DNA of 64,000 bases from Lytechinus pictus. Lineage: Eukaryota. Of this stretch, positions 23,091 to 62,765 are shown one piece after another; positions within the stretch are counted from its first letter, which is position 1; the number at the start of each line of letters is the position of its first letter. The notes beneath the pieces are model-generated. The model saw nothing but the letters and a program-made list of their open reading frames with translations. It was not told the DNA's origin and did no database searches. The position numbers were made by a program, and so were the translations under genes. Where the stretch lies: the NCBI RefSeq assembly GCF_037042905.1, contig NC_087248.1:17298001-17362000 (forward strand). The letters run 5' to 3'.

Positions 23091-24999
23091 AGTAGAACTA
23101 AATTACATGTTATTCATATTAGTCGTAGCCTGCAGATCTAGATACAGCGGACACGTTTTTAAAACAAACGAGAACTCTAATTAAAACTGAATCTTTCATT
23201 TTCAAATTGAATAGCCGAGTATCGCCCCGGGGATTTCGTTAACAATAGCTTGATCAAAGGCAGCGGTAGTGCGGGAAGAAAATAATTTAATATTTTGTTT
23301 TTAATGGTCAGTCTTCTTCGGTCGTTAATTGTTTTTATTGATTGCCTTTGTAAGTGTGAGAATTAAACCGTGTCATGTAAACACTACGAAGCACTCTTGT
23401 AAAGTAGATAATGAAATCAATAAAGTTTTGCTTCATTTGTTTAATTCTGCATGATATTACATCATTTCTTATGACACCATTTCAAAAATGGTGTTCCATT
23501 TTATCTATCGAAACGTCTTCCCTTTCCATTTCAATACCCTGTTTTCTTGGCCTAGTTCTAACCAAAAAAAATCAAATGATGTGGGTTGTGTATAGAGAAA
23601 CGTGGATAATAAACCTAACCACATGGCCGGGAATAAAAAAAAAGAATGTAAAAGTTTGCTGTCATATCGAAGAGTTCTTTGAATATAAAGCATACATGAT
23701 ATGGAAAGACATTTTTTTCTTCTTCATTTTTCGCGCATAGCCCATCATGGGCTGATGATGGTCCAACGAACCAGCTGTCTTCCAGTTATCTATATAGGGT
23801 TCAAGGTTCGAAACTATGTCCATTTGTAATTTATCTTGATAACAACCGATCATCATGTAAAAACTGCAGTAAATATTATCATGTTTAAGACAGGGAGTCG
23901 AAAAGAATGTGGACACTATGGCTATTTTCTTTAAATTGTTTGCTACTATTTTGCTTTTCGTTTTAAGCGGTTAACTGCGAATTGTATGAATTCCAGCCTC
24001 ATCCGAAAGACGAACTTGCAATGTCTGAATACCGATGTAAATCGCTTAAGGATATCAGTGCTGCAGAGTCGGTTATTCATATTTTTATGTAACTTCATAT
24101 CCTGCTCTCCTTATGCCAACATAAAAAGTAGCACATGTTTGGAGGGCATCTCCCAAATGGACTTCACAAATTTATATGACATATGTTAAGCCAATCCCAT
24201 CCTTTTCGATTGAGTCTCAGCTATTAAAGAGCCAAGAAGGCTGCGGCATGTTGGCCCGGAATTATGACAAGTAAATGTTTGGCCGAATATTTGACCTGGT
24301 TGATATTAACCCACTTTTCTTTTTCTTGTTCGTCTTGTTTCCCGGCGAAAATCCTCATGTCGGCTCGATGCCCGATTGGATTTAGGCTGAATACTCATTT
24401 TAGTATTATTCCAAACGGACCCTTTGTCTCATATACCGCTATAGAGTTTCCCCTCGTGCCGACATGGCTTAAACCATGTAAGTTTATATCTGTCCGTCTG
24501 TCTTCAAGTCCGATATTAAATTCATCTACGCCTTTTCAAACTTTCATCTCTTTCCAACTATTTCTTTCTGCTCTAGATTATTATCTCGTTCCCCCTCTCT
24601 ATGTAATATTCTTCTTATCCTGTCCTCTCATTCAGTATATCGTTCTCTATTGCGAATACCTACTTCCTAACTGTTACGATATGAGCTATCAAGAAATTGT
24701 GTCTACGCGCCTGTGCGTATTATAATATCTCTATATATCCATATGTAAAGGGAAAATAAGTTCATCTTTCTACTTCTGACTTCCTACCCCCCCCCCTCCC
24801 ACTTCATATCACTCCTCCCTTCTCTTGCACTCACTTTCTTTCCTTCTTTCTCCCTCTCTCTATCTCTCTCTCTCTCATACTGATTACCGTACTTCTTCTC
24901 CATCTCCTCTCTCATTTTTCTTCCATTTCTAAACACTTTTTTCTCCCACCCCTCTCTCTCCATCTGCTACTGTCTATTACTCTGTCTCCTTTCTTATCA

Positions 25000-25198: not shown

Positions 25199-25792
25199 CA
25201 GTGTATATTTCTTTCTTTCAGTCCGATCCCTGTCTCTGCCCCACACCTCACTCTCTCTCTCTCTCTTTTCTTTTTCCTCTCACCTCCTCTCTCCCAAATG
25301 TATGTTCCCCATTCAGTCTTTCGTATACTCTAGTGTCCAATTCTTACTTCCTAGCTGTCAGTATGATGACTGAGATGCTATCAATACTTGACCCAAACCC
25401 CCATGCGGAAACTCGGAGTCATTATCACTCAAAATGATCGTCCATTCCACGCTATCACCTATAGGTGAACAGCACCTCATTCTCTCTAACTGAGAGAGAT
25501 TCAAAGAAAAATAGACACATAGGCACTACCATATGAGAGGACGATTTGAACACAGAAAGCATTGCACGTAAGATGCTTACAAAACATGATAAGATAAACA
25601 ATTGATGCCAAACTTGTAGAAAGTAGGGGGTAGGGAATATTGCAATAGATAGATGCACTGATAAGCAAATAGCTGGATGGATAGATATAAAGATAGATAG
25701 ATAGAAATATGACTGGATGGAAAGAAATAAAAAAGAAGTGATAGAATTAGACTAATAAATGGATAGGAAGATAGATGAAAGAATAATTAGAT

Positions 25793-25795
<3 letters not shown>

Positions 25796-25839
<44 letters not shown>
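25796..25839. repeat. (TA)n microsatellite
   Basis: Direct reading. Confidence 0.95.
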
Positions 25840-25842
<3 letters not shown>

Positions 25843-26066
25843 GTGTAAAGTTATACATGTACAACAGCTTTGGCAACTCTTTTTATTTTAAATATTGTAA
25901 AGAAATGAATGAAGAGAACAATGGTAGGCGTAGCTTAAATCAAGGTTCCCCAGAGCTATCTACCCTTTAGAAAAATCACCCGACAAAGGAAATTATAATT
26001 GGTAAAGTGTCGAAAATTTGTCTATCTGACGGTCAATCGGATCGGGGTCGCCCTAGCCACTAACCC

Positions 26067-26138
26067 GTCTCTGTGGTCTAGTGGTTAAGGCACCGGCGTT
26101 CAAAGCTGGGGGCCCGGGTTCGATTCCCGGCAGAGACA
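26067..26138 (+). tRNA. tRNA-like gene with UCA anticodon (opal-suppressor-like, tRNA-Glu-like body); probably transposon-borne, function unknown
   Basis: Acceptor GTCTCTG/CAGAGAC plus A; D arm GTCT-AGTGGTTA-AGGC; anticodon arm CCGGC-GTTCAAA-GCTGG (TCA at 26100-26102); 4-nt variable loop; T arm CCGGG-TTCGATT-CCCGG; T6 at 26139-26144. Confidence 0.75.
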
Positions 26139-26144
26139 TTTTTT
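26139..26144 (+). terminator. RNA polymerase III terminator (T6)
   Basis: Six T residues immediately follow the discriminator base of the tRNA-like gene. Confidence 0.65.
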
Positions 26145-28734
26145 CGGCATCACCAATTTTTCTAAAGGGTAGATAGCTCTGGGGAACCTTGATTTAAGCT
26201 ACGCCTACCATTGTTCTCTTCATTCATTTCTTTACAATATATATATATATATATATATACAGTATGTATATATAGCTATATACACATATATATAATGGCT
26301 ACCAAAATGATGAGTGAAGGACTGATGTTGGTAGGTTTAAACTGATAAAAAGGATCTCTTTCAATATCAAACAATTAATTAATCCTTTCCCAAAAGTGGG
26401 TCATTGTGCGCCCATGTATTAAACACAAATCCTACAGCTACACCTGTTTCACATCTACCTTAGATCAATCTCAGTGTTATTGTGTGCCGCTACAAATGAA
26501 ATACGATCGATTGCATGGACATCTAACTAAGCTATGACAATAACGCGAGTGACTGCTACCTACAAACATCATTGACTGATAAGTGTTTTCTGATGGACCG
26601 TGGTAACATAGCCACTTGCTTCATATCTGAGTTAGATATATCTCGTAGTAATTTTGTTTTTTAATGTGATTTTCTGCGTAGGAAGGCTTGGGTAGTTAGA
26701 ATGACTAGAATAGTAGAATGACTAGAAGGGTCATATGTAAGCAAGGAGTACAGTATTTTGGTCAAACTTGATTATTTTGTGGTCAAATTTGTCTGTTACA
26801 CTGCCATTTCCGCCTGGAATATATTTTCTCATAGATGACAATATGTTTTGGTTGCACATCTGACTTTTGAACCAGTTGAGTTATTTTGACTGGTTCATTT
26901 CTAAAGTGTAAAAATACTTAGAAATACCAACTAATAGAATGTAAACCTAATCTTCGCGTGATCCGTTCAAAAGGATTAAGTTACATGCAAAGTCAACATT
27001 TCACGCCAAAAGAAATTCAGACGCCTTTTTATTAGACGCTATTTATTACCCGGTGCATAATACCTAGCCATGAATACATCCAATAAATGCTGAGCTGAGA
27101 AGAAGGAGAAGAAGAAGTGAAACCCTTGGGATGACTTGGCTGATTCGAGGTGAGATCACCTTCTTAATCCTTACACTAACTCTGTTTACTTTGCCTGAAT
27201 AAACCATTAGGCCATACCTCACGTGCTTCCATGGATTGAATAACGGAAATTTCAAGAGATAACAGCACTCTTCTCATTGTGATAGTGTTATGGTATAGTC
27301 TGTAGCCCGAGGCCCATCTCAGATAAGATTGCATGGGACCGTGGTAGGTGGAGAAAAAAAACCTCTGCATCAATCACCTATCGACTCTCTGAGCAGTCAT
27401 AATGTGATTGTTGAGAAATCAAGATGGTTTCATCGTGACTTATTAAGTCATTACACCAACATCGTGAAATATAACCATTATCTTGCCATTTTGATGGCCC
27501 TCGGAAGCCGGGTGCAGTGGTAAACCAAATTGACCTTAATTCTGTAGTGATGACATTTTTCTCTTTTTTTTTTCTTAACAAACCAGCACCCTAGGCTTTC
27601 TTTAGAAATTTGTACCAAGGCCCGTATCTGTTATTCCTATTTTCGATATTATTAGCCATGTATATTTTCAACATTAGAATTAATACAGCTAGGTAAATCA
27701 ATCTCATTCTGAATTTCTCTTAATATGGTCATTGAATCTTTGGTAATTTTTGAACTGCGTTAGTTTTTTTACACATATATAATTTAAGTTATCATTCGTT
27801 AAACAACATCCTCGTCATCATAGAACAGGCAATATTTATCTTCCTTTGCTCTTTGAGCATGTTAAGGATTCCTAAATAAAGTAAACGACGTTGACGAGTT
27901 ATGAAAAGAAAAGGTTGTAAAAGTACAGGTGTCAAAACATACTTCGTACTCTTCCATGAACATGTGCTTCAATTATAATTCAGAAGGACAAACATCCAAA
28001 ATCTACGCCAGCTGATGACTGAATACCAAATAAGAATATATTTTTGTTATATACTGCATGGAAATTTTGGATGCATAATTGGGCAGGTTCTAGATTAAAT
28101 GTGCAATATTATCAAGTTGGCGCAGCTGCTGTTATCCATTAAATTGTTGTTGTTTTTTAGTAGTCTTTAATCTTTGCATGCTAGAAGTCATGATGTCAGC
28201 TTTCCATGTTGCTTCAAAGCATATGTATGGTGGAAGAGGTGAAGGGTGGAGGGGGGATTCCGTACGAGCACACATTATCAACGATTGGGTAATGCTAATC
28301 AAAGCATTTGACCAAGTATACTATCTGAACTCATCTAGTCATATCTTTTAAAACCTGAATGAGACTTCGAGATGAGACTAAGTTGGATGGGTCAGCATCG
28401 GATAGTAATGGAAGTCGATCGCTTCATCCTTGGTCATTAAGACAATGGAATATAGTGAGAACGAAAATGAGCTACGCACATAGCGACAGCTCTAATATCG
28501 TTATTTACGGCGCTAGATTAGGTCGTTATATTTTCATTTAGGTTTCTTATTTTAAAATCGCTGCTGTGGCGTCAATGCACTTCACTTCAGTCAGGTGTCC
28601 ATGAATGAATACATATACCAAATTTTCGAGCACTGTGACCTCACCTTGAATGGCATGCTCGTATTTTACAGTTCGCATATACATGTAGTTCTTTCATGGT
28701 CAGGTTCGTGACTAATATAGTAAATATAGTTATA

Positions 28735-28783
28735 AGTATATATATATATATATAGATATATATATATATTTTGTGTATAATTT

Positions 28784-28813
<30 letters not shown>
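28735..28813. repeat. Compound (TA)n microsatellite
   Basis: Two TA tracts separated by a short spacer. Confidence 0.85.
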
Positions 28814-62590: not shown

Positions 62591-62765
62591 NNNNNNNNNN
62601 NNNNNNNNNNNNNNNNNNNNNNNNNNNNNNNNNNNNNNNNNNNNNNNNNNNNNNNNNNNNNNNNNNNNNNNNNNNNNNNNNNNNNNNNNNNNNNNNNNNN
62701 NNNNNNNNNNNNNNNNNNNNNNNNNNNNNNNNNNNNNNNNNNNNNNNNNNNNNNNNNNNNNNNNN
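62591..62765. other. Assembly gap (175 N)
   Basis: Run of N. Confidence 1.

Follow-up and report, generated by a model that had tools for sequence, protein, structure and literature searches.

A young repeat family of Lytechinus pictus, built around a complete tRNA-like gene with anticodon TCA, is probably a non-autonomous Penelope-type retroelement

The window analysed here, a stretch of 64,000 nucleotides from Lytechinus pictus (NCBI RefSeq assembly GCF_037042905.1, contig NC_087248.1, positions 17,298,001 to 17,362,000 of the forward strand), contains at positions 25834–26243 one copy of a repeat family that carries a 72-nt tRNA-like gene. A preliminary description had placed this element at 25892–26240 and interpreted it as a MITE (miniature inverted-repeat transposable element), in which perfect terminal inverted repeats (TIRs) of 85 bp enclose the tRNA gene. 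Both the arms and the tRNA gene are real, but the insertion extends beyond these borders, and the variable breakpoints, fixed 3′ ends, scattered and partly partnerless 5′ ends and long arrays of the family argue against a cut-and-paste origin. Instead, since each of five published traits of Penelope-like insertions is found here, the family is probably a non-autonomous retroelement of the Penelope type.

Genome-wide counts were obtained from the 812-Mb assembly that contains the window. An anticodon-arm pattern with the loop left free and at most one mismatch gave 2,258 matches, compared to none for the reversed control. An exact match to tRNA positions 1–36, in which TCA is included, occurs 1,692 times, a 35-mer of the inverted arm 2,957 times and a 30-mer near the long 3′ end 2,322 times. 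The family, with more than 2,000 copies that are about 1.4% diverged, is young and dispersed, as the preliminary description had proposed for an element with an intact-looking RNA polymerase III (Pol III) tRNA gene. The reference unit of 407 bp is composed of an upstream region (1–115), the tRNA (116–187), a T6 run with spacer (188–212), a 3′ region (213–347) and a linker (348–407). The majority of strong matches to the window copy are devoid of the left arm and are organised in head-to-tail arrays with a 407-bp period. In the longest array, 44 units of 406 bp on C2, 19 compared units are 99.9% alike pairwise and all 20 tRNAs within the fetched 10 kb are identical. Long homogenised head-to-tail arrays of this kind are a satellite-like trait, yet most loci comprise only 1–8 units, and copy sizes range from remnants of about 20 nt up to the 44-unit array. 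Full-text literature searches, using element strings of 21–22 nt as well as tRNA-bearing satellites or MITEs as subject, did not retrieve a description of the family.

Several readings of the unit itself were considered and rejected. The tandem-specific linker (unit 342–407) is not recognizable as a decayed inverted arm, as its local alignment was no better than that of shuffled sequences. An apparent discrepancy between identical tRNAs and elements that are only 89–95% alike is caused by indels and junctions, not by substitutions. An old subfamily around locus L036 was dismissed because the flank of L036 is unique in the genome. At locus L008, a 163-bp satellite (17–564; 3.4 copies, 86% identity) adjoins an array of the tRNA repeat.

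The window copy represents an ordinary insertion with one long and one short end (LS), formed by a reverse unit (347–205) joined to a forward unit (25–292). It is located between two microsatellites, (TA)22 at 25796–25839 adjoining the left, long end and (TA)11 at 26238–26259 adjoining the right, short end. The inverted arms (25889–25976 and 26156–26243) are 88 nt long and differ by one mismatch, located at the outermost edge (25891); thus 85 nt are perfect as previously described, but the left arm runs outward for another 55 nt, for which the right side has no counterpart. This one-sided ‘tail’ (25834–25888, minus strand) corresponds to unit positions 347 to 293 in reversed orientation and forms an L-type end. 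The left arm proper, also on the minus strand, corresponds to a 5′-truncated inverted partial copy (unit 292 to 205). At a head-to-head junction with 1 nt overlap (25976) the direct copy starts on the plus strand with the sequence upstream of the tRNA (unit 25–115; 25976–26066), followed by the tRNA gene (26067–26138), a terminator-like T6 run (26139–26144) and the right arm (unit 205–292), which terminates in the short (S-type) 3′ end ...CTTTACAATAT. A second T run downstream of the tRNA, T5, is situated at unit 206–210. Read-through RNA of the window copy is predicted to fold back on itself as a perfect hairpin, about 88 bp long (−236 kcal/mol, z −25).

The architecture of the family was determined from 137 segments at about 92 loci. 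The 3′ ends (n=135) are largely fixed: unit 292 accounts for 54 of them, 347 for 40 and 339 for 11, with 84% falling at two sites, 292 and 339–347, which lie 47–55 nt apart and are both found within the motif CTTTACA(A/C)AT. The 5′ ends (n=136), by comparison, are spread over all 407 unit positions and do not peak at the start of the tRNA (unit 116). Directly after the 3′ end, (TA)n was observed in 109 of 134 cases. Head-to-head joining to an inverted 5′-truncated partner accounts for 88 of the 136 5′ ends; 31 of the remaining 48, which have no partner, adjoin (TA)n, usually at TA/AT microhomology. Among the 43 head-to-head junctions, which display either 0–7 nt of overlap or 1–31 nt of filler, nearly all are different, the exceptions being one local duplication, one locus that was fetched twice, and the pair L005/L010. 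Only two tail-to-tail neighbours were found, each with a TA spacer. Arm lengths vary between copies from 27 to 965 nt, and two-armed insertions combine a long (339–347) with a short (292) end in 29 cases, whereas two short ends occur three times and two long ends never (binomial p=1e-6). The arms of one copy differ by 3.4% compared to 4.9% between copies (permutation p=0.0005), in line with an origin of both arms from one template at insertion and later divergence. Due to the (TA)n flanks on both sides, a TA duplication is indistinguishable from the microsatellite, and in the copies with a unique 5′ flank (L032, L064, L085) no clear target duplication was seen.

These features bear directly on the interpretation as a classical MITE, which would be a non-autonomous cut-and-paste transposon with TIRs of 85–135 bp bound by a transposase and inserted at TA. 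Two thirds of the 5′ ends indeed belong to two-armed structures with outer ends at defined sites beside TA, L005 and L010 share one junction despite their location on different chromosomes, and the genome harbours active Tc1/mariner-like elements that target TA. However, a MITE predicts constant arms with a common inner structure, while the inner junctions of the family are nearly all unique, and the third of 5′ ends that have no inverted partner adjoin (TA)n or unique DNA directly. Moreover, neither the polarity of fixed 3′ and scattered 5′ ends, nor the systematic inequality of the two ends, nor arrays of up to 44 units fit this mode of transposition. The termini are unlike the CAGTG-type ends of the genuine Tc1-like family, and the size is heterogeneous, in contrast to the constant length of about 820 bp in that family. 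A classical MITE is therefore very improbable.

The Tc1/mariner-like family used for this comparison is the second abundant family encountered (2,388 first-look candidates; L022:1781, L083:1187, L085:1161 and L094–L103). Its structure is constant, with termini of TA followed by CAGTGCGTCCCA and inverted arms of about 320 bp that are 180–195 bp apart, and many of its copies have unique flanks. Often it is found in or beside (TA)n, and sometimes it adjoins the (TA)n of a tRNA repeat. Beside one Tc1-like copy, an open frame of 506 amino acids with ten C2H2 zinc fingers is present (L098:25–1542, minus strand).

Penelope-like insertions have been described by Craig et al. (PMC8557442) as highly 5′-truncated, arranged in partial tandems and often preceded by an inverted 5′-truncated copy, with a ‘tail’ of 30–40 bp at only one end that is specific to Penelope-like elements. 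The same study identified (TA)n as a preferred target of Naiad elements, which lack canonical hammerheads, and noted the existence of non-autonomous derivatives. Biochemically, a purified Penelope-like protein was reported to cut AT-rich DNA and to extend both strands; reverse transcription started from two adjacent internal RNA sites, the interval between which equals the genomic tail, and multi-copy transcripts were proposed as templates (Frangieh et al., PMC11167929). The family in L. pictus displays 5′ truncation together with a defined 3′ end, partial head-to-tail tandems in its multi-unit runs, an adjoining inverted 5′-truncated copy at the 43 head-to-head junctions, a tail restricted to one end, as seen in 29 of the 32 two-armed insertions, and (TA)n at 3′ ends as well as free 5′ ends. 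From this correspondence we infer that unit positions 292 and 339–347 are the start sites of reverse transcription.

A probable mechanism would begin with the arrays, which would give rise to multi-unit read-through transcripts serving as template. The reverse transcriptase (RT) and GIY-YIG endonuclease of a Penelope-like, probably Naiad-like, element would then copy such a transcript into (TA)n microsatellites. Reverse transcription starting at either of the two internal sites and proceeding for a variable extent would generate 5′ truncation and partial tandems, whereas priming on both target strands would create the inverted 5′-truncated partner and thereby the apparent TIRs. The segment separating the two start sites would remain on one side only and form the tail, in the window copy 25834–25888. 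As part of the unit the tRNA gene would simply be carried along, and copies would afterwards decay in the tRNA at about the same rate as in the remainder of the unit.

A short interspersed nuclear element (SINE)-like repeat that is moved by a long interspersed nuclear element (LINE) and ends in a (TA)n tail would also be expected to show polar 5′ truncation, a 3′ flank of simple repeats and junctions with microhomology or filler; its inverted arms would arise by twin priming as in 5′ inversions of the LINE L1. In bivalves, tRNA-SINEs have been reported in tandem-like and palindromic structures (PMC11481361). The copies in L. pictus, however, do not start at the tRNA head but have 115 nt of family sequence upstream of the tRNA, and the T6 and T5 runs after the tRNA would stop a Pol III transcript of the SINE type. 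An inverted partner is found at about 65% of the 5′ ends, a proportion far above the rate of twin-priming inversions in L1. In addition, a one-sided extension is not known for LINE insertion and has been described as specific to Penelope-like elements (PMC8557442). Transposition by a LINE is accordingly unlikely.

Alternatively, the family might spread at the DNA level without reverse transcription, either by a rolling-circle mechanism similar to that of Helitrons or Helentrons, which insert between A and T, or by templated repair of breaks in (TA)n during which a neighbouring unit is copied. Such a process would be in line with (TA)n on both sides, with unlike ends and tandem concatemers, and with an imperfect 16-nt palindrome recognized by eye about 9 nt before the long end; satellite-bearing Helitron-related elements occur in bivalves. 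But 5′-TC or CTRR-3′ ends are not present, inverted arms of more than 80 nt are unlike Helitrons, and symmetric repair predicts neither the polarity of fixed 3′ and variable 5′ ends nor the combination of a long with a short end. We regard spread of this type as doubtful.

Returning to the Penelope-type reading, a search for possible autonomous partners identified 468 GIY-YIG candidates in the genome, 16 of which are above the Pfam cut-off. Their frames reach up to 954 amino acids and some are arranged in inverted pairs; the pairs at C8:37400803–37402023 and C19:10762669–10767606 are candidates for intact Penelope-like elements. Frames of 954 and 731 amino acids are located at C19:10.76 Mb, and further autonomous candidates at C6:8.71 Mb and C8:29.77 Mb. 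At locus L092 (1–849, minus strand), a 5′-truncated RT fragment with one in-frame TGA and one frameshift (RVT_1, E 1.3e-12) is oriented head to head with a tRNA-repeat copy, its 5′ end adjoining the (TA)n tract that this copy adjoins as well.

Several observations weigh against the assignment to the Penelope type. The RT fragment of L092 is a single adjacency among the approximately 92 loci, and while we take its motifs to be Penelope-like, the RVT_1 match itself is generic. The Penelope-like partner is a putative one, deduced from insertion traits and the presence of long GIY-YIG frames, and the tail of 47–55 nt exceeds the 30–40 nt of published Penelope-like insertions. A hammerhead ribozyme was detected by Rfam neither in the window (no match at E≤1) nor in L008 (no match at E≤0.01), which is consistent with Naiads but deprives the assignment of one marker. 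The 3′ region of the unit has no significant RNA structure (z +1.1), target-site duplications are unreadable inside (TA)n, and coverage of the unit by polyA RNA is weak and found on both strands.

The tRNA gene at 26067–26138 (plus strand) is the only tRNA called by ARAGORN in the window and is matched by the Rfam model RF00005 over its full length (model positions 1–71) with 60.9 bits (E 1.8e-12), which is in the same range as the 62.2 and 59.5 bits obtained for host tRNA-Glu genes. In agreement with the preliminary description, all four stems of the cloverleaf are paired, including two G-U pairs (T11-G24 and G29-T41), the anticodon is TCA, the quoted A-box and B-box strings are present and the T6 run follows immediately. 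The conserved core of tRNAs is likewise present (U8, A14, G18-G19, U33, the T-loop TTCGA and A58), with the exception of G at position 32, which had been pointed out before. In its 7/5 fold, the gene has a D stem of 4 bp and a variable loop of 4 nt, whereas tRNA-Sec is characterized by a 9/4 or 8/5 fold, a 6-bp D stem and a long variable arm. As already proposed, the gene is therefore not a tRNA-Sec, and the label ‘SeC’ given by ARAGORN results from the anticodon alone.

The previously noted resemblance of the D and T arms to tRNA-Glu is exact in comparison with the host genes: a D-arm block of 16 nt and a T-arm block of 22 nt are identical to both tRNA-Glu(TTC) and tRNA-Glu(CTC). Differences are found at five of the seven acceptor pairs and throughout the anticodon arm, but the pairing remains perfect. 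The gene appears to be derived from tRNA-Glu. Since the T6 run directly follows position 73, without CCA, the gene seems to have been taken up as DNA and not as a retro-copied tRNA. For the same reason, a Pol III transcript starting from the tRNA promoter cannot template copies that include the 3′ region. Host tRNA-Glu genes form tandem arrays at C16:2595333–2598784, with a spacing of 371–388 bp, and at C17:25857153–25881014, with a spacing of about 600/1,250 bp, so that tandem tRNA gene arrays are native to this genome. An origin of the unit from such an array was rejected, as no flank homology to six tRNA-Glu loci was found.

Whether or not the Penelope-type reading holds, the tRNA could in principle be a working gene, either as a UGA reader that is transcribed by Pol III, processed and charged, or as a source of tRNA fragments or a TFIIIC boundary under selection; the preliminary description had similarly suggested an opal suppressor, a tRNA-fragment source or a TFIIIC insulator. 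This would agree with a covariance score equal to that of host tRNA-Glu, with A- and B-box regions identical to host tRNA-Glu, with a perfect acceptor stem and immediate T6, and with acceptor and anticodon stems that have diverged from tRNA-Glu but are fully paired. Sequence variation in the family argues against it. Excluding the 31 nt used for finding copies, rare variants occur at 44 of 3856 positions in the tRNA (1.14%) and at 289 of 20508 in the upstream region, spacer and arm (1.41%), giving a ratio of 0.81 (Fisher p=0.20), a test of limited power, given the low divergence of the family (about 1.4%). The density of variants common to at least three loci is no lower in the tRNA than elsewhere (p=0.62). 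Of the pattern named as a check in the preliminary description, a conserved TCA with compensatory stem changes, only the first part is found: TCA is kept in most copies, due to the low divergence of the family, but changes that break stems are frequent and no compensatory pairs were seen among the aligned tRNA copies. A small number of old, decayed copies have preserved the tRNA better than the flanks, which is a hint only, as these copies were found via the tRNA itself and the signal is thus biased. One old copy (L036:930–1200; C1:5.26 Mb) has genome-unique flanks that are 65–78% like the unit, while its tRNA part is 93% alike; this tRNA carries a 9-nt duplication in the D arm and the loop GTTCTTA.

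Three polyA RNA-seq runs compared with one unit yielded 72–82 reads per 11 M records, derived from both strands. Read depth follows the DNA copy number and is continuous across T6, and one run is dominated by a single diverged copy. In none of the three runs did reads pile up at discrete starts or ends on the unit, although polyA libraries cannot reveal Pol III products of tRNA size. The signal represents read-through transcription, with multi-part transcripts at low level. In a sequence-run index, the window stretch is contained in no run recorded as RNA; the runs that contain it stand under three organism labels, with library type unrecorded and possibly all DNA.

Given the absence of extra constraint, the atypical G32, and the harm to be expected from about 1,700 intact suppressor genes, a working tRNA gene is highly unlikely, and function as an opal suppressor, a tRNA-fragment source or a TFIIIC insulator is unsupported. 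More probably than decoding UGA, the tRNA is carried along as a passenger, acts as a promoter or processing module, or represents a TFIIIC site. There is only a slight chance that some of the approximately 1,700 intact copies express a UCA tRNA that is of use to the mobile element system itself. In one version, it would read in-frame UGA codons in the open reading frames (ORFs) of Naiad-type Penelope-like elements; Naiad ORFs of clams and spiders carry several such codons. In the other version, the tRNA would take the place of a hammerhead, allowing host RNase P and RNase Z to cut multi-unit transcripts to monomers. Either would make the gene a functional tRNA gene borne by a retroelement and not a dead passenger.

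Elsewhere in the window, a stretch of about 20 nt at 28772–28793 (plus strand), between (TA)9 and (TA)11, resembles the L-type 3′ end of the family and may be an extremely 5′-truncated copy, but a 20-nt match could be due to chance. Immediately to the left of the bordering (TA)22, a degenerate GATA-type microsatellite extends from 25647 to 25790. The neighbouring ORF (24264–24725) gave no Pfam match and no convincing atlas match, and a run of 175 N at 62591–62765 represents an assembly gap or a masked stretch.

Should the Penelope-type reading be correct, the family would be a non-autonomous partner of a Penelope-like element that is built on a whole tRNA gene and not on a hammerhead ribozyme, and it would join SINEs, Cassandra, Helenus and Ajax among the retroelements that acquired Pol III genes. 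The family also provides a clean natural data set on integration, comprising two start sites, a one-sided extension in 29 of 32 cases and priming on both strands. For annotation, this genome will yield about 1,700–2,300 false ‘SeC’ or suppressor calls by tRNA finders, while copies of the family will be mislabelled as MITEs by assemblers and repeat classifiers. Furthermore, about 1,700 Pol III units that look intact and whose anticodon reads a stop codon constitute a natural test of how a metazoan tolerates or silences potential suppressor tRNAs.

Comparison with known systems reveals partial similarity to several groups of elements. The host tRNA-Glu genes share the D- and T-arm blocks and the organisation in tandem arrays, but differ in the anticodon (TTC or CTC instead of TCA) and in their non-homologous flanks. 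MITEs with internal tandem repeats, such as pearl/CvA and DTC84, are likewise short and non-coding and combine inverted with tandem repeats and microsatellites (PMC3879986, PMC5139131); however, their subterminal inverted repeats are fixed and they contain a core repeat, whereas arm length and breakpoint differ between the copies of the family. The bivalve tRNA-SINEs resemble the family in forming direct arrays and palindromes of tRNA-related repeats (PMC11481361), but their copies begin with the tRNA head, contain no internal terminator and are flanked by target duplications of 6–18 bp, while the tRNA of the family is located in the middle of the unit and followed by T6. In TRIMp3 elements (Cassandra, Helenus and Ajax), which are non-autonomous long terminal repeat (LTR) retrotransposons with 5S- or tRNA-derived sequence in the terminal repeats and for which tandem arrays have been reported (PMC10886601), a small Pol III gene is similarly part of the terminal module that is repeated in a non-autonomous, non-SINE retroelement. 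As LTR elements they possess a primer-binding site, a polypurine tract and target duplications of 4–5 bp, and the tRNA-like sequences within them do not adopt a tRNA fold, in contrast to the perfect cloverleaf and the Penelope-type architecture observed here. Penelope-like elements (Naiad and Penelope/Poseidon) and their derivatives, animal retrozymes and non-autonomous Chlamys of the MRC1 type, share 5′ truncation, partial tandems and the inverted partner, as well as the one-sided extension, a choice of two 3′ start sites and insertion into AT-rich or (TA)n targets (PMC8557442, PMC11167929). Tandemly arranged non-autonomous derivatives have been described (bioRxiv 10.64898/2026.07.22.740005), whereas a non-autonomous element of the Penelope type built around a complete tRNA gene was not found in the literature searched. 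The likeness to these derivatives is one of architecture: where they carry a hammerhead ribozyme, the unit of L. pictus contains a complete tRNA gene with its own terminator.

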